A stretch of DNA of 64,000 bases, from contig CAJFCJ010000016.1 in the NCBI GenBank assembly GCA_904063045.1, forward strand, positions 806,001 through 870,000, in the 5' to 3' direction. The notes under the pieces were generated by a model that was not told where the DNA came from, did not search any database, and saw only the letters and a program-made list of their open reading frames with translations. This DNA is from Dimorphilus gyrociliatus. Its lineage: Eukaryota; Animalia; Annelida. Both the position numbers and the translations under genes were made by a program. Below are positions 15,799 through 64,000 of the stretch, in pieces (the stretch's first letter is position 1; the number at the start of each line of letters is the position of its first letter).

Positions 15799-18700
15799 TT
15801 ATGCTGCATAGAAATTGTTGTTTTGGCAAAGCTTTTTATCTTGGTGGTTGCATAATTTCTTTACGGTTTATTTATTATTATTTTTATATTTTGCATGCTT
15901 TATACAACACTGTCGATCATATTTCTATTTTTAACGATTGTCTTTTTTTTTTTACAGACAATATACAGAATATAATTCCAGTGGAGGCATGTACACTCCA
16001 GTAACTGGAGCTACCTACTATCAAACACAAAGTGGTCATGTTCAGGTATGCAAATGGTTCACCGTTTATATAAGAATTCTTAGAAGAGCTTATGTAAAAT
16101 ACAATAATAGTGAAAATTATTTCAAATACTTTTCATATTTATTCTTTTGTATTTACTTCAATAGACTGCGTCAACTGGCCAAATTATCAACCATGGAGGA
16201 AGCATGTTCCTTGTACAAGGTACTAACGTTACTACTGATGGAGGAATAGGTAATCATACGACAAGAGCCTCTCCTGTTACGGTAAATATTAAAAAACTGT
16301 TTATGGGTAACAAATTTTTAAATGGTCACATGATGAATTTTTTTGTTTATTGTAAATTTCTTTTATAACCTACAAATGGAATACTGTATTATCTCTGAAT
16401 AATCTTTACATTTAAAAATTCAATTAACGTATTTTCTCACCATTTTATTTTTTTCACGTGTAACTTTTCAGTTAATTAAAAAAAAAACAAAGAAAGAGTA
16501 ACTACTTTATTTAGGTAAACTATTTAAAAATCAGTCAGTTTAACGTTTGGCTAAGAATAATATTTCTCTTTCTAATTTAAAAACAATACTGTCTATTTAA
16601 TTGAATTAATTTATTATTTACTTCTCGAGTTAACTAGAAACGTACTTAATGGTGAAGAAACGCGATAAGCATAAACAATACTAGATTGTTAATTTCCACT
16701 AACACATATTTGTAGGTTTTTATTTTGGAGGAGGAAAGAATAAGCATAATTTTGTCTAGTGAAAGTTTTTTTATTTAATTTTTCTTTTCAATTAATTGAT
16801 AATATATTTGATTAAACTGAAAAAAAAAGAAAAAATGGAAAAATTGTAAAGGCAACGTGAAGCAGACCACATAATAAAAAAAGAATTTTTTTTTTTAATA
16901 TTTTTATTTTTTCAAAATAGATTCTCTTTTCAGTTTTATGTGTAGACTTCTTTTCTAACATTCGCAGGAACAGAACGGATCTTCTTCTTGCCCTCGAACG
17001 GCCAACTTCGATGCCAAATCGTGGCAAAGAGAAGTGAGTGTTCGGTTTACAAAAAAAACAAAAAAAATGCCTTTCCTGGCCGGGTCTGCATGTTCACGTT
17101 GTCTCTAGCATGTCTAACAATATCATTTTTTGTATTGTATTTAATATCACGTGATGAAGCTTGTTCACTGTTTCTTCAGCGCGAATTGTCGTTGCTTGTC
17201 GCCTTATCGCTGTTAAATTACACTTTGCTTGCTAAAACAGAATTAGTATTTTTTTTAAAGGTTAGACGTAGAACGTTTACTTTCTAAGGTTTAGTCCAAG
17301 TAAATATTCAGTTTTACATCCGTATGCATATATTTGGTAGCAAAACGATAAAACCATATATGTATATGAGGATGTAAATTAACTAATAACTGAAAATGAG
17401 AATACTTTTCGTGTTTCGTCTGAAACGTATACTTTGATATAGCATGTGACCTTCGCTATAGAGAGCAACAATGAGAAAAATAAGAGTCAATGGGTATCAT
17501 TATTACATTTATTAGTTAAAACTGTAATCACAACTTTAAATTAAACATTTTATTTTTTATAAAGTAATACTTTTACTATTCAGTTCTCTTTATTGAAGAC
17601 TGTCTATTTTTCTACAGTATACTATAATAGATTCAAAATATTTCCATTAGATTTTTCTTTTCTCTATTCTATTTTCTATCGTCTATCTAGTATTTTCTCT
17701 GTTGCTCTCTTTTATTATTCAGATACTTGTGTTTCTGTATAACTTACGTATAATAATATTTAAAGACAGAATTTTATACCCGAACGTAGATTATATGAAA
17801 TTATTGTTAATTGGTTGTGTACTAAAATTTCAGGTTCAATGGCTGTTGGATAACTACGAAACAGCGGAAGGCGTCTCTCTACCCCGATCAACTTTATACA
17901 ATCACTATTTACAACACTGCAATGAGCATAAGATTGATCCTATGAATCCCGCTTCGTTTGGAAAGTTGATTCGATCAGTATTTTTGGGACTAAGAACAAG
18001 GCGCTTGGGTACCAGAGGCAATTCAAAATATCATTATTACGGCATAAGGATTAAGGCGTCTTCTAATCTGCATCAATTTCCCGACGAGCAAACAATGGCC
18101 ATGAGACAAACTCCGATGACTCAGGCTGGTAAAAAATTTAAGGGGGCTGGAGCTGGCGGAGTTGTTGGATCAGGAGCGGATTTGAATCCTGATAATGTGA
18201 TATCTGGTATTGATGGACAACACCAACAGTACTTGGGCGATCATTCAGCAGGATTATCGCCATTTGAAAGCATCAAAGTTGAAAATCTTGTATTGCCTGA
18301 AGGTGTTACTATCCACCACGTTCATGCTCTTGAAGAATTGTATAAAGAGCATGCGGAAGCTATTTTAGACGTGGTAGTTAATTTACAGTTTGCTTTAGTT
18401 GAAAGATTATGGCAACAATTTTGGAGGAATGTACCACCGAATCAACCACCCACCGTAGATTCGGACGACGATGAAGAAAGATTACCAAAGAGTACCTTAT
18501 ACGCTTTGTGTAAGCTTGAGCCTGTTCAAAAATTTGTTAAGTCGGCTGACTATAATTTCTATCAAGTTCTCGTCGAAGTACTTATACCCGATGTTCTTAG
18601 ACCTATTCCATCATCTTTGACACAGGCTATAAGAAATTTTGCCAAAAACCTTGAAGGTTGGTTGAGGGAATCAATGACTGGTGTAAACGAAGGTATGACT

Positions 18701-19312
18701 AGTATTCGTTGTGCCGCCGTTAGTGCTTTAGCTCAAACCCTGAGGCGTTACACCTCCTTAAATCATTTGGCTCAAGCAGCACGAGCGGTTTTACAAAATA
18801 CTCAACAAATTCAGCAAATGTTAAGCGATCTAAATAGAGTAGATTTGAATAACGTCCAAGAACAGGCATCATGGGTGTGTATGTGCCCTGATACTGTCGT
18901 TGAAAGGCTGCATCTCGATTTTAAAAATACACTGCAACAGAATCGAACACTAGAAGAGTGGGCTCAATGGCTAGAAAATGTAGTTAGACAACAACTGCAT
19001 CCATATGACAATAGCGGAAATGCCGATCAATTGGCCAAAGTTGCTCGGCATCTTCTCCTCAAATGGAGTTTTTATTCTTCAATGATCATACGGGATTTGA
19101 CTTTGAGATCGGCTGCCAGTTTCGGAAGTTTTCACCTAATAAGACTTCTTTATGATGAATATATGTTCTACTTGGTTGAGCACAGAGTGGCTCAAGCTTT
19201 GGGGGATACTCCAATAGCTGTGATGGCCGAATTAAAAGCTAATCAGACGAGTAAAAGCAGTGTAGTAGGAGCAACGCCTCCGTCGAAACGAATAAAAGTT
19301 TGTCAGCAGTAA
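13810..19312 (+). CDS. RFX: RFX1/2/3-class winged-helix transcription factor, about 674 aa (696 with the cassette exon). Exons 13810-13924, 14728-14953, 15958-16045, 16165-16281, [16968-17033], 17834-19312
   Basis: HTTRASPVT|VQWLLDNYETAEGVSLPRSTLYNHYLQHCNEHKIDPMNPASFGKLIRSVFLGLRTRRLGTRGNSKYHYYGIR is the RFX DNA-binding domain, followed by B/C boxes and the dimerisation domain (LKWSFYSSMIIRDLTLRSAASFGSFHLIRLLYDEYM). Confidence 0.97.
16968..17033 (+). CDS. Probable 66-nt in-frame cassette exon of RFX (EQNGSSSCPRTANFDAKSWQRE)
   Basis: Pyrimidine-rich acceptor ..TTCTAACATTCGCAG|, consensus donor |GTGAGT, phase 0-0, no stop codon; lies between RASPVT and VQWLL. Confidence 0.65.
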
Positions 19313-49989: not shown

Positions 49990-52900
49990 TCAAAACATAC
50001 TTATTTCCGGTAATGACGCCATTGAGTGGGCGTATGGTCGTCCTTCTCCAACCACTCCACTTCCAGCGCTAATCACAGACATAGTCCTTCTAGACATTAC
50101 TGCCTCTCTTGTGTTCTTATGAGGTCTAAATATGCATATATATACTTTTGGAGCAAATATACACGATACAGCAATCAATGCATTGACCGTAACTGATAGT
50201 GAAATAGCTATAGGCCTTATTGTATAGAATACAAAGAAAGTTGGGAGGAATGCTACCCAAATTACCCATGTAGAATAGGACGTAAAAGCTATGAATTTCG
50301 TTTCATTGAATCCATCAGGAGTTTTTCGTGTTCTGATTGCGTAATAAGTACAAGCAAGCATTAGAAGTAGAGGATATATTAGCGGTACCAAGAAGCTAGT
50401 ATTCGCTAATCCTTTGCAAATTAAAATATTACTATCCCGTGACGGATAAACAAAAGTTGAAGTTGGCTGTAGAGCAACTAACCACGAGATGAGAACGAAT
50501 ACTTCTATAGAAAGCAGGCATAGAACTATGAACATTTGAGACTTTGGACTCGTTAACTTTGTCTTTTTAGTGACTTGTTTCGGCTCAGTTGGAAATAGCC
50601 TGTAGACTCGATTCGTCTTTGTGAGTATAGGAGCGTAGAGAGCAGCATAACAAAATCCGACTAGAAATCTGCTCGCTCCACACGTTCCTCTACTAGGTTT
50701 CGCTAAAAAGATAAAAGAAGATATGCAACAAAAGGCGCAAGCTCCGAGAAGAAGTGCGCTTAATTCTCTGGAAGACGCCTTTATAACCGGTGTATCTCTG
50801 AATCTGAACATGACTATTCCAACTAGTATAATTATTAATAGACCAATCGACGATACAACCAAACTTGCTATTGCAACCGGATGAGTATAATCAATGTATT
50901 GAGGTTCCATTGCAATGCAAGACTTTTGTTCATCGTCTGGTTTGGTTCCATTTGGGCAGTCTACACAAGATTCTTGAAATCCAATCGAAAAAACCCTACT
51001 CCACACCGGGCATTTAATGCAACTCCAGCAACAAGCCAATCCAATTCCACCACTAAATTTTCTAATTTCACCAACACCGCAATCCTCCGAACATATTGAT
51101 GAATTATAAAGGGTTGGGATATCTTCATCCACTTGTAGGAAAGTTTGATTTGTATATTCGCCTTCAACTTGAGTATATACACCGACTTTATGCCAACTAT
51201 CGTCAACCGTATACCTATGTTGCAGAGGAATTAGATATAAATCATAATATATATATATATATATATATCTAAATATAAAAGAAAAGTCATAGAATAATAT
51301 TTAAAGTTGACGACGGTCTTTTCTTTTCTTTCTTTTATCTTTTATCAGAAACGGTAATAATACTTTTTGATGTTTCTGTGGCAAACACTTGATATTGAGT
51401 TGAATTAATTTTTTCGCAGTTGTTAAGTAATAACGGTAATAAGATAAAGAAAAGGATAAAAGAGATAGGTGCAAAATGTTATAGAAATAACGTCCAATAA
51501 ATTATATGTACCTATAAATTATTATTTTATGTGTCCTGCTAAAAGAACCTATTTCTTCAACTCTAATCGGATAAGATAACTAGACACGTGTTGACCGAAT
51601 GCTCAAGTTTTGTTTTGACCCAATTACCTTAGAACTGAATATCTTGGTGGTCCATCAATACCGCCTTGAAAATAGAATGGAACGCCGGATATACCAGTAA
51701 ACGTTGAATTTCTTATATATTTGATCAGCGTTGATCCAGAAATATTCCCAGGTCTCAATTCGCTGCAAAATTCATTTGTAGATCCGCAAATATCCTTATA
51801 CATTCTAGAAAGAGAGTCGACAAATACTTGAACAGCATCGTATACGTAATGTAGAGATGGTATTTGTTCATAACCATTTTCTGGTCCAATAATAGCATTC
51901 TCATCGCAGTAGTTGTCGCTGTTTCTATTTTCGTCGTTAAATGAACAATTAAAGTGATATTCCCAATATTGTTTGAACCATGGATTCCTCGTATTGTTGA
52001 ATGGTTTCAAGCTGGAAAGGTAAAGCAATATTTAAAAAACCAGCAATTTATTTAAACAATAAGAGAGATTTTGATAAACCTTTGAAAGTATTCGTCAAAG
52101 TTAGGTATTCTAAAGGCGTATGGTTGAATTGCTAAAGCGTTATTGACAATTTCTTTATGTTTCTTTACAACCGACATCCTTCCTGCCCAACCGTCGACTC
52201 CTAGCCAATAAATTGTTTTATTTAAACCAACTTGATCGGCTGCCTCGAATAGATAATCCGCATTTGTATAATCTAAATAAACTATTACAGCTTTTGCCTT
52301 ATTTTTATTATCGGTAAGGGCTGAAATAATGGCTTTATACTGTCTTAGTCCAGGCTGGTTGACTCTGACTTGAAGAACTTTTTCAAAGCAAACATCGTAT
52401 AATGCAGCTATACCGCTTAGCTCGTAAAATCCCCTTGTACCGTAGTTCGAATTCTCGTATACAATCGATACAAACGTCCATTTCATTTTCCTTAACAAAC
52501 TCAAAATTGCGTTCACTTGAATGCTATCGGAAGGTACTGTTCTCGCTAAATATGGAAATCTAACTACGTTACTAATATCTGACGAAGTTGATTGAGGAGA
52601 TATTTGTGGAATGTTAAACACTCTGAACATATTGGCAAGGGCCATTGTTACTCCCGATGAAGATGCTCCAACAACTCCGATCATTCTTTGCAGGGCTTTC
52701 ATATCCGATTTAAGTATTGGTTTTGTATCATTGCTGTATAATTTTTAACAATAAAAATTGAATTATTCAATAAAATAGCTATTTAAATTGAATAATAAAA
52801 ATATAGTTAAAGTAATAACAATAAGAATTCATGAATATTCATTAAGTGCTTATAAATTTGAATATACAGTATATATTGTATGTAATGAAATTGCGAAACA

Positions 52901-53360
52901 TAAGTGTTTTTGTAATAATTCCTTTTTTTCTTTGACCTATTTCTGGTGTGAATAGAATAGAAAGAGGAGAGTGCTCAAGTACTTACTGGCAGACGTACGG
53001 TATTGAATCTGAAGTATCATCTTTTGTCATAAGAATACGTATAACGTTCATTCCTTGTTCTAGAGCATGAGCGTCAGAACTACAACTATCGAATGCTATT
53101 CCTCCTAAACTAAATTTAGGCAATCCTGGTAGTTCTTTTCTATTAATTTCATCTAGAGTAAAATGGAAGGCTTCGAGCATTTGTATACCATCTTCTTCGG
53201 CTACTGCGCCGCATAGTTGTCGACCGTATAGGCCACTTTCGTGAACCGGAAAGAAGGCTATCAGGAGAATGTCTCCAGTATAATTGGCAAAGTTTGAACA
53301 CTTTACAGGAACTTGAAACAATAATATAAAAAAAATGAACTTCACAAAGAGCATATTCAT
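49990..53360 (-). CDS. Metabotropic-glutamate-receptor-like class C GPCR, about 878 aa. Exons 52987-53360, 52080-52733, 51628-52011, 49990-51214
   Basis: Signal peptide; Venus flytrap (GDILLIAFFPVH, FDSCS, GVVGASSS, RTVPSD, GVDGW, RNPWFKQYWE); 9-Cys domain (SICSEDC..CCWSC); 7TM (TPVIKASSRELS, ILTKTNRVYR, KTPDGFNETKFIAFT, FAPKVYICIFRP). Confidence 0.95.
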
Positions 53361-53783
53361 GTTACCGAAGTCATGTTTACTGTTGTTTATAACTGTTCAA
53401 AGAACGATTCGTAAATGATAATGGATTTACTCGATAATATCTAAAAATCGATATAAAATGTGTCATTTTTAAGTAACAGATAAGATAAGGAATGATTTAA
53501 ATAATAGAAAAGGTCTAGCCTTATTTATTTTTCATACTAAAAATTCCGTTTAATAGACAGACACAAGTATTACAAAGACATTATGTATTTGTAAATGTAA
53601 ATTCTTGAAGTTTCCATTCGATTATCACCGATTTTAAATCGGAAAACAAAGAAAACTAATGAATTGGACAACGTCTATAGATTATATAAGAAAACCTTTC
53701 ATTTATTTTAATAAAAGGAGAAAGGAAGAGGAAGGAAAGCAAGAAAGTTTTCTTAAAGCTATTAAACATAAATCTTGAATTAT

Positions 53784-54110
53784 TTATCCGTATTTTGTGC
53801 TATTTAATACAGAATGCATTGTAGGACGAAGTACTATCAGTCTATTCCAGTGTTGTCTAATTTCTTCTTTATAGGAAATGGCTTGACGGTTATGTTGCTG
53901 TTTACAGCATCGAAATGGTATTGTATCCGCTGATATCCTTATTGAAGGCAATATTGCTGTAGATTCCAGTTTTTTACATACTTTAGTAGGCACCTTGCAA
54001 TCGTATGTTGTAAAAGAAGAATTTCTATATTGTATTCGAGGAAATCTCGAAGAAGTTGATTGTTGTACAGGATCTAAAGTTAGATTGACGAGATTTACAG
54101 CAGTTTTCAT
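53784..54110 (-). CDS. Unassigned 108-aa ORF upstream of the GPCR (small gene or uORF)
   Basis: ATG-initiated, coding-like GC and third-position bias; acceptor-like AACAG about 18 nt upstream; AATAAA about 80 nt downstream. No homology recognised, and the antisense frame is also open. Confidence 0.3.
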   Translation of the reverse strand: MKTAVNLVNLTLDPVQQSTSSRFPRIQYRNSSFTTYDCKVPTKVCKKLESTAILPSIRISADTIPFRCCKQQHNRQAISYKEEIRQHWNRLIVLRPTMHSVLNSTKYG

Positions 54111-56614
54111 TGCAGTTTGGCTGCTGTTTTTTTTTTGGTATATAATAAAATCAATAAAACTTCCGAAATCGTTTAATTTTAATTGTAATTGATTTTTTTA
54201 CCATTGATTTAAAATTAATCGGCGTTTACTTTGAACTTTAGACATTTCGCTTTAAGCTCAAATTAGGCCAAATGAGAATGTTGAGTCAGTATCCTCTATT
54301 TCGAACGAATAAGAAAACAAACTTGTACTTGAAGATAAAGAAACTTGAATAATTAATAAAAAGATATCATTCTTATGTTATGGAATATTCTCTTCCTTTA
54401 AAAACTAAACAACTAACTTGCTATTTGCCGATCAAAAGTCTTCTACGAGGAATAATGAATCACTAACCCTGACCCAGCCCACTTCGTCTCTAGATCTAAC
54501 AACAAATAGATATTAGTATCGATCTCGTATCGATTCAAACTGAATTAGCTAATGATAAAACATAAAAAAAATGAAATTACTTTTTCAACATTTTCTCGAA
54601 TGTAACGCCATCTATTGGACGCTCTCTTTCTCTCTGTCCCTTCCTCCTCTCCCGGCTGGAATGTAAGGGAGGAGAGAAGGAAAGAGAGAGTGAGAGAGAG
54701 AGTAAATTTTGGAAGTAGATTGAGAAAGAAAAATATACCTGTTTTTAGATGAATTTCAAGGATTGAAACCGATTAAACTTTTAATGGAAAAGGTAGAAAA
54801 ACTTGAATAAACAAAAGTCGATTAATAGACATAAATGAATACCTGAAAAATTGATGTTCATTTACTTAAAGGAATGTTTTTTTGATAAAAAGGCCAACAT
54901 GTGGTAAATTGTTATCAAAACTTTTTCAGGTGAAAAAATTCTCTCTTTCTCTCTCCACCTTGATCTTTGTGTATATATGTGTGTGTGTATGTGTATTTGT
55001 CTGTTTGTGCGTCTTTCCTTAGTCTCTTTTATTTATTTCTCTATCTCTATCACTTTTCTTTCCTCTTTCTCTCTCTCTGTCTCCCTCTCTGTCTTTTTTT
55101 AAGCCTACAAAATGAAGCGACGTAATTCAACCTAATTACAAGCCGTTTGTCATCATTTACCCTAGTTTGCTGAATGTTTTTGACAGTTATTTCGATTGAC
55201 GTTGCTTTCATTTTTTTTATATTCCAATTTTAAAAAAAAAAGAAAGAATATAAAGAAAACAGTAGCGATTATTTTTTTATCGTAACTTTCAAACTCTACG
55301 TTGCAGAGGTCACAGAATGTTAAAACTGGTAGTAATTTGCCGCATAGCTTCCGCATAATTATCCAAGCTGTTAATAATTATTTAAATAAGTTAAATATCG
55401 ATAAATTAAATGAGAATATTAAAAGTATATATAAATTGTGTAAATTACCTTAATAATAACATTAGATGATGGCCTTTTTTTAAATTTAATTGTTACTTTT
55501 CTCTTGTTTGGGAATGCGTTAATGGCCAATCCGGATATTGTAAATATTTGCCTACAGTTGCTTGTAGCTGTTTGCAATTTGATACTCTGTTTCCTAAGAT
55601 CCTCTTGCAAATACCAAGCATCCGTTGCAAGAAATCAAATGATTTATTTAATAGTAAATAGCTTTACTAATTTCTTTACCAAAAGCCTTTTAGCTATTAG
55701 AAAACTTTATTAACGTAAGTTATTTAACTTTACTCTCTGTCTCTCTCTCTCTCTCTCTCTCTTCTTTTTCTTTTATTCCATTCCTCCTTCCTTCCCTATT
55801 TCCCTATTATCACTATTCTATTTGTTATATACGTATGGATGGATGGATGGATGGAGAGATATATTCTAGGATTTTTTTTTATCTACGTTTTCCGAGAATA
55901 CACTATATCGACTAGTAATAGAGATGACGCTGAAGGCGTTGGGCGTCTATTCGAAAATATTCAACCGACTTATTTTTTATACGATAGAAGAAGAAAGAAA
56001 GATTCTATTAGATTAGTGTTTTTTTTTCTTTCAAATCGATTATTTTGAAAGAGAGATTTTGTATATATTGCTTGTGACGTCACATAAAAAAATTTTTTTT
56101 TCTTTACCAAGCTTGGTTAAGATTAGCTGTGGTAATTGTTTTGATTAGAATCTGTCTATAGCACATTTGTTTTAGTAGCTGTTGGCGTCCGATAGTTACT
56201 TTACTTTTCTTATAGAAAACATCTTTAAGAGTAGAGAATAGAAATCTTTAATTTATTTATTGTTTACTAAACAATTAACTAGCTAATTTCAAAAAATTTA
56301 TTATTTCTAGTATGTTTAATTAACTAATTAACTAATTTACTTAATTAATTAGCAATTAATTTGCATAAAAAAGGTTGTTATTCAATATTGCGTATACTAC
56401 ACAGTACGTAAAATATCTTATCTATTATCTCATTCTTCCTTTATTATATTTGTATATACAGTATATATCTATATCTATGTCTATATATCTAAATAGTGAC
56501 TTGAGTTAATTCTATCTTTAATGTTTTAATATTGGACGAATATAGGATGATATTTGAAAAAGGTTAGTCCTCTTTTCCATTTCTCTTCTTTCTTCATCTT
56601 CTTCTTCTTCATCA

Positions 56615-56661
<47 letters not shown>

Positions 56662-56810
56662 GCTCCTTCTCATCTTCAGTTTCTTTCTTAGGGAATGTGA
56701 AAGTATGGGTTTATTTCATGTTTGAAAAAAGTAATCCTTCTCAAGTACCGCAATTATATATAATCTTTCAATTTTCCACTCGTAGTTTGTCAATATTACA
56801 GTCACTTTCA

Positions 56811-57020
56811 ATGACAATGCAATACGATGTCAACATTTTTGTTACGCTCCTATCTTTGTTATTAATTATTGTTATCTCTCTTTGTTTTATACTGTCGATA
56901 AGGAATCGCTGTGTACGTTGTAAAGAGGCTCTTTGTTTAAGATACGATAATGATAAAGTGAAAGAGGAGGCGGAGGATGACGGAAAAAAAAAAGAGGAGG
57001 AGGAGGAGGAGGCGGTTTGA
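56811..57020 (+). CDS. Single-pass membrane microprotein A, 69 aa (MTMQYDVNIFVTLLSLLLIIVISLCFILSIRNRCVRCKEALCLRY..EEEEEEAV)
   Basis: ATG 10 nt after acceptor TTACAG; about 21-aa hydrophobic helix followed by basic and Cys residues; acidic tail. Confidence 0.55.
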   Translation: MTMQYDVNIFVTLLSLLLIIVISLCFILSIRNRCVRCKEALCLRYDNDKVKEEAEDDGKKKEEEEEEAV

Positions 57021-57046
57021 TAGTAGATACGATTGAACCTCAAATT

Positions 57047-57262
57047 ATGACAAGCCGTGCAGCTATCGTATCCGTTTGGTCTTTCATTATAGTTTTACTT
57101 GTATTTCTCACCCTCTTCTTCTGGACTTTACTGAAGAATTCTAGGATTAAAAAAGGATTATCTCAAGATTACGATAATTCGATACCGAAACCACCCAATT
57201 ACGAGGATATATGCGATAAACCACCGCCCTACGAGCCTGTTATCAACGTGACTTGTTTATAA
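57047..57262 (+). CDS. Single-pass membrane microprotein B, 71 aa, with two PY motifs and a PDZ-type C-terminus
   Basis: MTSRAAIVSVWSFIIVLLVFLTLFFWTLLKNSRIKK..KPPNYEDICDKPPPYEPVINVTCL; TM helix with positive-inside flank, PPNY, PPPY and T-x-L end. Confidence 0.7.
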   Translation: MTSRAAIVSVWSFIIVLLVFLTLFFWTLLKNSRIKKGLSQDYDNSIPKPPNYEDICDKPPPYEPVINVTCL

Positions 57263-57964
57263 ACATGAAAAAATAGGATGCTCAGGGATAATATTCACCA
57301 ATATCCTCTTCGGATTGACGGAATTCGGATAATGATGCTAAAATGCACTAATAAACAATTTCTCAACGTGCAAAATAGGCCTCTAAGAATTTAGTTTTTT
57401 TTTTGCAGTGTATTCACCTATGCTATTATTAAAATGGCGTGATGTAATAAATCATCCCTTAATTGAATTTTGCATAAAAATTCACCTTCTTTTTTAACTT
57501 GCGTCTGACTTATTTATGTAAAATAAATGTGAAATAAAGTCCCTTTTTCTCCTTTCTCTTCGTCTTCCACTTCTTTTCCATTCTTATATCACTTAGTATA
57601 AATCTTTCTTTGTTGGTATTCTCTTTCTCTCTCTCTCCCTCTCTTCCAGTTTCCCTTTTTAATCATTGTAAAAAATTCTATCCACCGGGTCATTCAACAT
57701 TGTCAAAAATTATTGAGAAGGCCTTGAAATATCGGACAGATGGCTCTGATAGTTAGGATTAACGACTTATTGTACTGTCTATTCCCCTATATTTTTTGTT
57801 TGTTAATTTTGTTTGCATTAGTCGTAGACATTTATTCTTTTGCAGTAAAAATTCCTAACTGTAAAAATAACTAAAATATTCCTTATTTCGTTTTCTATCC
57901 AATAATTGAATTATTACGACTAGTCATTTTATTTTTCTCCTTCTATATTCTTTTATTTGTTTAT

Positions 57965-58003
<39 letters not shown>

Positions 58004-58283
58004 TTCGGTTTTATGTATTCGTTTTGTCAATGACTCGTCTTTAAATGTATACAGATACAAGCAGACACGCACAGACAGACACATAGATATTTATATAAAT
58101 ATATAAGTATATTCATATATATGCCATGGGAAAAATGAAAAAAAAGTTGGATTTGTAATATTTAATACCCTGTTCTATATTAATAGAAATGAATGAATAG
58201 ATGAATACAATAATGATAATTAAAAGAAAAGCAAAAAGAGAAGGAGGTTAAAATAGCAACTAATCTTTTTACATTCTAGTATA

Positions 58284-58325
<42 letters not shown>

Positions 58326-58937
58326 ATACTGCTATATACAGTATTTATACACAGAAAAGGTACTCAATATTATGTACAAACAGCAAACTATAAAGAGCGC
58401 TTTTTGTTAATGATTAAAGTGCTTTATTTCTACTTTGTGGACTTACAGAAAAATAGATATGATTATTTATTTAAATAACTACATGCTTAAATTCTGTATA
58501 TATATATATATATATACATATATATTTATATGTGTGTAGAATAAGATTGCATAAAATTAATTAATACTCTCTCTCTCTCTCTTCCCCTCTGTATGTACGT
58601 CTGTCTTCATCACTGTCCAAGAATAATTTCTTCTCTCCAGCACACACACGTAGACTTATTAAAATGTATACATCTACTTAAAAACAATACCTATACATAT
58701 CACATAATGATGTATTCTATCTACAAATTAGGTTTAAACCATCGTAACCTTACTCTAAAATTGGCCTTGTTTCTAATTATATTTTTATTTAAACAATATT
58801 TTCATCCTCTCTGTTTACATGGGCTAATCAAGCGCGTTCTCCTTTAATTAGGTAGGACCCGTACAAAGTGTCCGCTAGGTGACGTTCTAGTAAATTCTTC
58901 TTTTCAAATTCGAGGCGTTCGCTGGTTGGACTAGAGG

Positions 58938-62400: not shown

Positions 62401-63397
62401 TTCAATAAATCTATTAATTTATATATAAATTACAATAAAATCGAAATCTGAGAAGGAAAGAGATGAGTTGATAAAAGGAAATTACTTTTATAGAAAAAAT
62501 GCATGAGATCTTGGTCGTTCTTAGTATCGCTATTCTTATTATATAATCTAATTCTATAATAAATAAATAAATAAATACGGGGAAGGGTGCAAAGTTCACT
62601 CTGCGTTCGACCATTAATCGCCTTTTTCTCTTCACCTCTGTCATCAATCATTCGATTAATGTTCACTTAAATGAGAGAGAAAAAGATGAAAGGAAAGCGA
62701 CAAAGCACGAGGGAGATATATACTGTATATACATATCTCTTGTCATTCTAAACATTTTTTCAACACTAGCAAACAGTTTGGTTGTTGGTTTAGAATGTTT
62801 TTAATTTTGAGCAAAAACCAAAAACCAAAAGGAAAAAAAAAAACCTCAAGATCTTATGATAAAAACTTTCCAACTGCACGCAGCCAGAGGCTGGAACGTC
62901 TATCAATAACAATCTCGAATATTTTCTACGAATATAAAAAACCAGCATCCTTTCACGGCGCACCGAACTTGACGCTCTGTATTGAAAAAAACGCCTATTC
63001 AACGCCGCCCGGTCGGATGATTATCAATTTATAGTACGGGTTTTTTTTCTCTATCTTTCGTACAGGTATTGCTCGAGCATCTTCACCTACCACTTCCGCT
63101 ATTTCGACACCTATAACCAGTTTGGACGCCTCGGAGATTATGGAGAATTTCGACAGACCCAGAAGAGCTAGTAGTAGATCAAAACAAAGAAAAAAAGACA
63201 AGAAGAGAAACATGCTACCAACTAGAAGCCAAGATGATAATTGTAAACAATCTAAATTGAATAGAACTTACTCAAACGAGTATAAGATAAAAAAAGTTGT
63301 ATTTGATGGATACGACATAACAACTCGTCCAGTTATGAATGATAGCGTTGCTATGACAGTTGTAATTGGAATGTCATTATATCATATCCTTGATACG
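58938..63397 (+). CDS. Cys-loop ligand-gated ion channel subunit (nAChR-like), 3'-partial. Exons 58938-58971 and 63066-63397
   Basis: Splicing (phase 1) gives the signal peptide MLVICALFLCTSIARA. Exon 2 ends EYKIKKVVFDGYDITTRPVMNDSVAMTVVIGMSLYHILDT|GTAAGT, the alpha1/beta1 start of Cys-loop extracellular domains. Confidence 0.8.
59368..59462 (+). repeat. (GAA)n microsatellite with AGAAGAAGTCTA and GAACAA variant units
   Basis: Direct reading of the sequence. Confidence 0.9.
59964..60210 (+). repeat. Compound (CT)n/(GT)n/(CA)n microsatellite tract
   Basis: Direct reading. Many similar (TA)n and (GA)n tracts occur elsewhere, e.g. 537-580, 23881-23915, 43016-43110, 56620-56660. Confidence 0.9.
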
Positions 63398-64000
63398 GTA
63401 AGTTAAACTGTAATAGTTTGTTTTCTTTTCTTTTCAAAACGTATCTCTTTCATTTCTTCTCTAAAAGTGTTCAATCTTTCTCTCTCTCTCTCTCTATTTC
63501 CCCATACTTTACCTTCTTTCTCTTTCCTTATTACATAATTGTTAATAGTTAAGACTTCAGCTCTTTTACTATCGTAACCTTGACTCTTATTTGATGATGA
63601 TCATTAATTTTATAAGGAAAAAGAAAAGAAAAAACAAGAAAAAAACACCCAAAGATTATCCGTAAATTACTTAATAAGCTACTTTTGAAATTATTAAAGA
63701 AAAAGTAAATCCTATTATACTAATAATTTTCATTAAAATGAATATAAAAAGAACTCTTCCAGACAGAATTTCTATATAGGAGAAAATTAAAAGAAGTTCA
63801 TAGGCCTAGATTGTGTACAGTTAATAAAATATTTCATTACATTCTATATTGGTAATAATTGTAATTTGAAGACTCGCGTTAGTTTTTACCAACAGACTCT
63901 AAAATAGTGGAAACGCTCTATAGACGCTTTTTAAATAATAAAAAAAAATTCACTTGCGGTAACAGCTTAAGCGGAAAGGTTCTCTTTTATTGGGAGAGAG

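Follow-up and report, generated by a model that had tools for sequence, protein, structure and literature searches.

A conserved pair of small open reading frames in Dimorphilus gyrociliatus predicted to encode two membrane microproteins, one of them a candidate PY-motif adaptor

Introduction

Do two short open reading frames (ORFs) lying close together on one strand of the Dimorphilus gyrociliatus genome encode two separate membrane microproteins, a single protein joined by a frameshift, or no protein at all, and, if they are genes, to which kind of known system do they belong? ORF A (56811-57020, plus strand, 69 aa) begins with the ATG at 56811 and stops with the TGA at 57018-57020, which is followed by TAG TAG. 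ORF B (57047-57262, plus strand, 71 aa) runs from the ATG at 57047 to the stop codon at 57260-57262, leaving a spacer of 26 nt between the ORFs (57021-57046). All positions refer to the window, meaning the whole stretch of 64,000 nucleotides that was analyzed. B lies in the -1 frame relative to A, a frame that is open from 56981 into B, and the acidic tail of A contains a run of ten adenines (A10, 56984-56993) that makes up KKK codons.

This geometry, namely, both sets of ORF coordinates, the 26-nt gap, the -1 frame, and the A10 run, was re-derived and agrees with the initial annotation of this DNA. That annotation had also reported that no poly(A) signal separates the two ORFs, which holds for AATAAA, whose first copy downstream of the A start is at 57350, but it overlooked an ATTAAA variant at 57146, within ORF B. 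The parts that we distinguish are as follows:

56735-56810, plus strand: conserved upstream block, 79 to 80% identical to a sister species with no indel, read as a putative core promoter with a short 5' leader
56811-57020, plus strand: ORF A microprotein, predicted N-out/C-in single-pass protein with an acidic tail ending in EEAV
57047-57262, plus strand: ORF B microprotein, predicted N-out/C-in single-pass protein with PPNY and PPPY motifs and the C-terminus VTCL
57263-57545, plus strand: probable 3' untranslated region (UTR), with AATAAA at 57350, 57446, 57522, and 57533 and a putative 3' end

Results

The ORF pair in a sister species

The word-index protein search with B returned one match (P0001, 76% identical), located on the Logan contigs L001 and L002. 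The same type of search with A alone gave no match, and the A orthologue (P0002, on contig L007) was found with the A alignment. The three contigs (L001 and L002 from SRR23372216 and SRR23372228 and L007 from SRR31984831) are all genomic and come from one species, the only related species found, so the selection tests described below are a single pairwise comparison. Contig L001 is collinear with window positions 52980-57967, GPCR exon 1 included. Across L001, L002, and L007, the sister species retains both ORFs with their ATGs, as well as the TGATAG stop of A and the spacer, so that a conserved A-plus-B arrangement, which the initial annotation had left to be sought, is found in the same order and with the same 26-nt spacing. 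The counterpart of A (L001:4035-4208, 58 aa) is 67% identical to A and was not gene called on this contig, and the counterpart of B (L001:4238-4450, 71 aa) is 76% identical to B, with no indel.

The spacer is the least conserved part of the unit (54% identical to the relative), and its freedom from indels is not significant (P = 0.54). For nearby intergenic DNA, the alignment level is about 70% and indels occur once per 42 nt, and the flanking noncoding DNA is alignable at 70 to 80%; because of this background, conservation alone proves little at this locus. The sister species has one more ATG in the frame of B, overlapping the A stop codon (gtATGAtag, L001:4208-4211), which gives an 81-aa form of B. 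The window has TTG at this place, and the overlap is not conserved.

Evidence that both ORFs are coding

ORFs of the size of A and B are common in this AT-rich DNA (31% GC), which raises the possibility that neither ORF is translated and that both have survived by chance in conserved noncoding DNA or in a noncoding RNA. This explanation is also favored by the 70 to 80% alignment of the adjacent intergenic DNA, by the 3' part of the unit, which is 86 to 90% conserved without coding, with the 3' UTR matching the ORFs in conservation, and by the lack of both proteins for this genome in a collection of 15 billion sequences. Against it stands frame-specific selection in both ORFs. In the pairwise comparison with the sister species, dN/dS is 0.29 in A against 0.95 to 1.3 in its off frames and 0.29 in B against 1.2 to 1.4, and in both ORFs the second codon positions have changed least and the third positions most. 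We ran a neutral simulation, in which the observed number of substitutions was placed at random following the local substitution spectrum and a trial counted as a success if the frame stayed open, the ATG survived, and the amino-acid changes did not outnumber those observed; this gave P = 8e-4 for A and P = 5e-4 for B.

The indels, the control ORFs, and the codon usage likewise argue against a noncoding origin. The 452-nt block from A to B contains a single indel, which is 33 nt long and in frame, so that no frameshifting indel is present against the local rate given above, and the probability of finding no indel in B at that rate is 0.006. Of 12 ATG-initiated ORFs of at least 40 aa in the collinear 5 kb, only GPCR exon 1, A, and B are intact in the relative, and the other control ORFs decay. 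A itself is intact there when taken from the ATG at 56811, and its upstream extension is broken. Codon log-odds were trained on 1,770 codons from exons already known in the window; in both species they are positive for the claimed frames of A and B only, and these are the best of the six frames. In addition, the two PY motifs and a cysteine cluster are invariant, and Rfam gave no match within 56735-57545. On these comparisons, both ORFs are very probably translated genes, and we consider the noncoding explanation highly improbable; as far as the two sequences can tell, A and B are conserved and under purifying selection as separate proteins.

One protein or two

A and B might instead form one two-helix protein, through a -1 frameshift at A_AAA_AAA, through transcriptional slippage, or because the run is a miscalled A11. 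The -1 frame that is open from 56981 into B, the fit of the heptamer to X_XXY_YYZ in the zero frame, and the long-read, PacBio-based assembly (PMC7854359) can be cited for such a fusion. However, the 33-nt in-frame indel contains the A10 run, and the relative lacks this segment; the run is species specific. The relative ends A with KEEAEKEEAV-TGA-TAG and the window with EEEEEEAV-TGA-TAG. Since the relative, without the A-run, ends A in the same EEAV-stop and keeps a separate start for B, a fused ORF, a homopolymer error, and a conserved programmed frameshift are ruled out, and since the frame of A past the run reads the conserved tail, A10 is the in-frame length.

The RNA and the predicted protein topology agree with this result. 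The slippery A_AAA_AAA heptamer is present in the window only, the relative lacking the whole 33-nt segment, and no stable stimulatory structure of the kind required 5 to 9 nt downstream of such a site was found after A10 (minimum free energy against shuffled sequences, z = 0.10 and -0.17). The RNA fold across the spacer is no better than that of shuffled sequence (z = 0.31). Furthermore, the N-out/C-in charge pattern of the two helices cannot hold for both of them in one two-helix chain, and we attach almost no weight to a fused protein. The reading preferred by the initial annotation, two separate small type III membrane proteins, is thus borne out by the sister species, whereas its alternative, a fusion by -1 frameshift or homopolymer error, falls with an A-run that the relative lacks and with the EEAV-TGA-TAG end of both species. 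A 40-nt mini-intron joining A to B was considered separately and rejected on reading the sequence, as the sole GT...AG pair common to both species puts B out of frame.

Features of the two microproteins

ORF A starts with a short N-terminus (MTMQYD), followed by a helix of 24 uncharged residues (residues 7 to 30, 56829-56900; Kyte-Doolittle value, 3.1). The segment after the helix, RNRCVRCKEALC, carries the cysteine cluster C34-x2-C37-x4-C42 (56910-56936), in which C34, C37, and C42 are invariant in both species; these juxtamembrane cysteines are probably palmitoylated. The acidic tail varies in length between the species, and its EEAV end is invariant. The AlphaFold2 (AF2) model of A is a helix with a pLDDT of about 90 over the transmembrane (TM) segment. 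A PDB sequence search with A gave no match.

ORF B has the N-terminus MTSR, a helix of 25 residues (residues 5 to 29, 57059-57133), and a juxtamembrane region composed of the basic stretch KNSRIKK and then GLSQDYDNS. Its tail, KPPNYEDICDKPPPYEPVINVTCL, contains PPNY at 57191-57202 and PPPY at 57221-57232, both invariant in both species, and the last 26 residues differ from the relative at only two positions (P47S and P64A; 95% DNA identity). The AF2 model of B shows a helix over residues 4 to 45, and the PY tail is modeled as a coil of low confidence, as short linear motifs would be expected to give. The [LP]PxY motif is rare in the window, where it occurs 15 times per 37,580 open-frame residues, a density of 4e-4 per residue, and at least two copies are found in 2 of its 595 open stretches. 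The hydrophobic segments of A and B reach a Kyte-Doolittle 19-residue maximum of 2.6 to 3.5, and the 12 residues following the helix have a net charge of +3 in both proteins. Helix and charge together predict an N-out/C-in topology for A and B.

The PPxY motif is a ligand of class I WW domains. In this genome, two to four WW domains adjoin a HECT domain at at least three loci (C4:888513-890351, C9:1293578-1295829, and C7:3733323-3736061), although Nedd4 ligases are not the only WW proteins that PY motifs bind, which is a caveat for the partner of B. The PY motifs of ENaC that bind Nedd4-2 are, we assume, similar to the PPNY of B, and the EEAV end of A and the TCL end of B presumably fit PDZ-ligand patterns. 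The initial annotation had proposed a Nedd4-type adaptor; B has the sequence hallmarks of one (a helix, two invariant PY motifs, and WW-HECT ligases in the same genome), while the binding itself is a prediction from sequence.

A and B have a pattern in common, which consists of the helix, (R/K)N, basic residues, and YDN. The hhalign comparison of the two gives a probability of 52% with an E-value of 1.4e-4, and segment-wise shuffles give P values of 0.003 to 0.04 for the whole proteins and 0.007 to 0.12 for the tails. This is modest support for paralogy. A is a separate microprotein, rich in cysteine and with an acidic tail, and may be an old tandem duplicate of B. As a further observation, the helix and juxtamembrane segment of B (residues 14 to 50, 57086-57196) show a weak, nonsignificant resemblance to the helix and tail of the LDL receptor among PDB sequences (E-value of about 0.05), in which KNWRLKN...FDNPVY of the receptor compares with KNSRIKK...DYDNSIP of B and RNRCVRCK...RYDND of A.

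Probable transcription and translation of the unit

The conserved upstream block contains the TATA-like TATATATAAT at 56755-56764 and Inr-like TCAAT / CAGTCA sequences at 56790-56805, and upstream of 56735 the alignment falls to 52% with many gaps, suggesting that 56735-56810 might act as a promoter. On the other side, 57263-57545 is 86% identical to the relative overall and 90% over 57406-57540, with a fall to 57% beyond about 57540, and the relative retains the AATAAA signals matching those at 57350, 57446, and 57522. The 90% identity of 57406-57540, which has no Rfam match, exceeds that of the TM-coding parts of A and B and that of the intergenic DNA (about 70%). From this conservation and these motifs, we infer the transcription start and the poly(A) site of one intronless transcription unit of about 0.75 kb, roughly 56790-57550 on the plus strand, that would carry A and B.

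The pair has the layout of a bicistronic-type gene, with two conserved smORFs of fewer than 100 codons on one strand and no canonical poly(A) signal or recognizable promoter between them. Because no AATAAA occurs from A to the end of B, where only the ATTAAA inside B is found, the mRNA for A should include B, and we think it probable that the two share an mRNA. Whether B is actually translated from this mRNA is more doubtful, and we put the chance at somewhat below even. At position -3, the AUG of B has A in both species, and the first and second AUGs of A have T and A, respectively. Five AUGs precede the AUG of B in each species, which makes simple leaky scanning as in Sloth1/2 unlikely; ribosomes would then get to B by reinitiating after A or on a shorter mRNA that starts inside A. 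Three or four of the AUGs in each species are out of frame, three of them in the +1 frame of A, and these AUGs give no hint that scanning past A has been selected for. When an ORF of 69 codons is followed by a gap of 26 nt, reinitiation is as a rule inefficient.

These points bear on the possibility of separate mRNAs, in which B is made from the shorter transcript starting inside A and the longer A transcript spans B without translating it. The five AUGs ahead of B in both species, the length of ORF A, which exceeds what suits efficient reinitiation, and the poorly conserved, unstructured spacer are all in keeping with this arrangement, as is the published description of D. gyrociliatus, which reports canonical promoters from its epigenome analysis and neither spliced-leader trans-splicing nor operons (PMC7854359). 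A search for nematode SL1 was blank and is uninformative here. However, a promoter for B would have to sit in the coding sequence of A, which is itself under protein-level constraint, a promoter-like element was not recognized within A, and Sloth1/2 show that such pairs can share one mRNA (PMC9681215), which together make separate mRNAs somewhat unlikely in our view. A different role would fall to the ORFs if they were conserved upstream ORFs (uORFs) that control the translation of the downstream Cys-loop channel gene from within its long 5' leader. Conserved peptide uORFs exist, and A and B lie on the strand of the channel exon at 63122-63406, but this exon is about 5.9 kb away, beyond several conserved AATAAA signals and the sharp drop in conservation at about 57540, and full-length membrane-protein features and PY motifs are unexpected in regulatory uORFs. 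We consider a uORF role very unlikely.

Relatives and family searches

Pfam scans of A and B yielded only subthreshold, helix-driven matches, and the Ndfip/Bsd2, Commissureless, and WBP1/VOPP1 families did not match either protein up to an E-value of 10. When the B alignment was compared exhaustively by HMMER with 1.84 billion representatives, P0001 of the sister species was the only protein returned. Scans of metagenome and viral contigs with the A and B alignments were blank, which argues against a viral origin, in collections that hold few animal genomes. No convincing paralogue was found elsewhere in the genome, where the weak matches L004 and L006 are without a similar ORF. Both proteins are absent from the 15-billion-protein collection, from which records of this genome are possibly missing, and A and B are probably unannotated in D. 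gyrociliatus. The scarcity of relatives is weak evidence of absence, because gene callers often skip small ORFs and animal genomes are sparse in the collections.

The nearest language-model look-alikes of A and B are TMEM52, stannin, and viroporin-like clusters, with scores of 0.85 to 0.89; scores below 0.9 count as leads only. Like A and B, these type III proteins have an N-terminal helix, a basic or cysteine-rich juxtamembrane segment, and a short tail, but neither Pfam nor HMMER supports kinship with them.

Neighboring genes

A class-C GPCR (7tm_3, NCD3G, and ANF_receptor domains) is located at 49990-53360 on the minus strand and is transcribed away from the ORF pair. The first recognizable exon of the Cys-loop channel (63122-63406, plus strand) was identified by a subthreshold Pfam match to Neur_chan_LBD. 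The initial annotation had placed a receptor-trafficking module between these two genes, which is speculation. The GPCR is on the opposite strand and the channel exon is about 6 kb off, and a functional tie of the ORF pair to either flanking gene is unsupported.

Three further features of the window were observed. A single 536-aa open frame at 17702-19312 (plus strand) with a complete RFX DNA-binding domain and an RFX BCD domain reads as an ordinary RFX transcription factor gene with a large exon. A conserved 108-aa ORF lies at 53787-54110 (minus strand), about 430 nt upstream of the GPCR start codon and on the GPCR strand. Its counterpart at L001:1152-1526 (minus strand) is 77% identical and 90% similar over an ungapped alignment (E-value, 2e-63; pN/pS of about 0.18). 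This ORF, for which Pfam gives no match, might be another small gene that the searched protein sets lack, or it might belong to the GPCR gene as a 5' exon or upstream cistron. Finally, 58279-58355 gives subthreshold matches to mir-297, mir-3149, and mir-1277 on both strands, at 23 to 31 bits against gathering thresholds of 81 to 100, which we take as chance.

Discussion

We favor, with a probability of roughly 0.55, the reading that the locus is one compact intronless unit encoding two separately translated microproteins, of which B would be a PY-motif membrane adaptor. The strong helix of B, its disordered tail with the invariant PPNY and PPPY motifs, and the presence of at least three WW-HECT ligases in the genome make a lineage-specific adaptor of the Comm, Ndfip, or PYT-1 kind its most likely identity, as far as sequence features can indicate one. 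In this model, A would end at its conserved TGA-TAG and B would start from its own conserved AUG, and each ORF would yield a microprotein some 70 residues long, made up of a very short outer N-terminus, a single TM helix, and a cytosolic tail. Through its disordered tail, B would offer both PY motifs (PPNY and PPPY) to WW domains in HECT ligases of the Nedd4 family, and B might recruit or activate such a ligase on endosomal or Golgi membranes, whereupon neighboring membrane proteins, or B itself, would be ubiquitinated and sorted. Both the binding of Nedd4 by B and the way in which B is translated are predictions of this model.

A might pair with B in the membrane, a partnership that we conjecture by analogy with Sloth1 and Sloth2. 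Taken further, a truly bicistronic mRNA could encode A and B as subunits of a heteromeric adaptor, in which B would recruit the ligase, palmitoylated A with its PDZ-type EEAV end would set the cargo or location, and the fixed 5'-to-3' order would set the stoichiometry through termination-reinitiation. We regard this full version as unlikely.

The closest known system is Sloth1/Sloth2, a bicistronic smORF gene of Drosophila whose products are orthologues of SMIM4 and UQCC6 (PMC9681215). Both pairs consist of two 60- to 80-codon smORFs on one strand, each encoding a single-helix peptide. The Sloth proteins, however, are mitochondrial and conserved across eukaryotes and have no sequence kinship with A or B by Pfam, whereas the A/B pair is detectable only in the sister species, and B has PY motifs. 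In Sloth1/2, leaky scanning takes ribosomes past a single weak AUG to the downstream ORF, and the spacer is 5 nt, compared with five AUGs and 26 nt here.

PY-containing membrane adaptors (Comm, Ndfip, PRRG4, and PYT-1) are lineage specific and have little in common beyond their motifs (PMC12101832, PMC6913780, and bioRxiv 10.1101/2025.08.13.670147). Like Commissureless, Ndfip1/2, PRRG4, PMEPA1, and Caenorhabditis elegans PYT-1, B combines a predicted membrane anchor with at least two [LP]PxY motifs in an unstructured region that would be cytosolic. It differs from them in being far smaller (71 aa, compared with about 370 aa for Comm), with essentially no ectodomain, and in having a conserved upstream partner ORF, and no homology was found between B and Comm, Ndfip, PRRG4, PMEPA1, or PYT-1. 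Ndfip, moreover, has three helices and N-terminal PY motifs, unlike B. UL56-family proteins of herpesviruses differ from B in being C-terminally anchored, with the PY motifs ahead of the helix. They resemble B in being small, single-helix proteins whose chief feature is a PPxY motif engaging Nedd4-family ligases (PMC5849660), but the family is viral, and the viral contigs yielded no relative of A or B.

The locus joins two known kinds, a bicistronic-type smORF pair, with Sloth1/2 as the closest case, and a probable lineage-specific PY-motif adaptor, and what is new is this gene pair. The initial annotation called the module undescribed, which is right for this particular gene, while bicistronic single-helix smORFs (PMC9681215) and lineage-specific PY adaptors (PMC12101832 and bioRxiv 10.1101/2025.08.13.670147) are established.

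At the level of method, the locus illustrates that a single sister-species comparison can tell genuine smORFs apart from chance ORFs, of which AT-rich intergenic DNA contains many. If confirmed, the pair would add to the D. gyrociliatus genome two protein-coding genes that are missing from the searched protein sets. It would also represent a tandem membrane smORF pair outside insects and vertebrates, probably on one mRNA, in a compacted genome described as being without operons. B would be among the smallest PY-motif membrane adaptors known, near the bare minimum of an anchor and two PY motifs, and would as such be a convenient model for how adaptors engage and activate Nedd4-family ligases.
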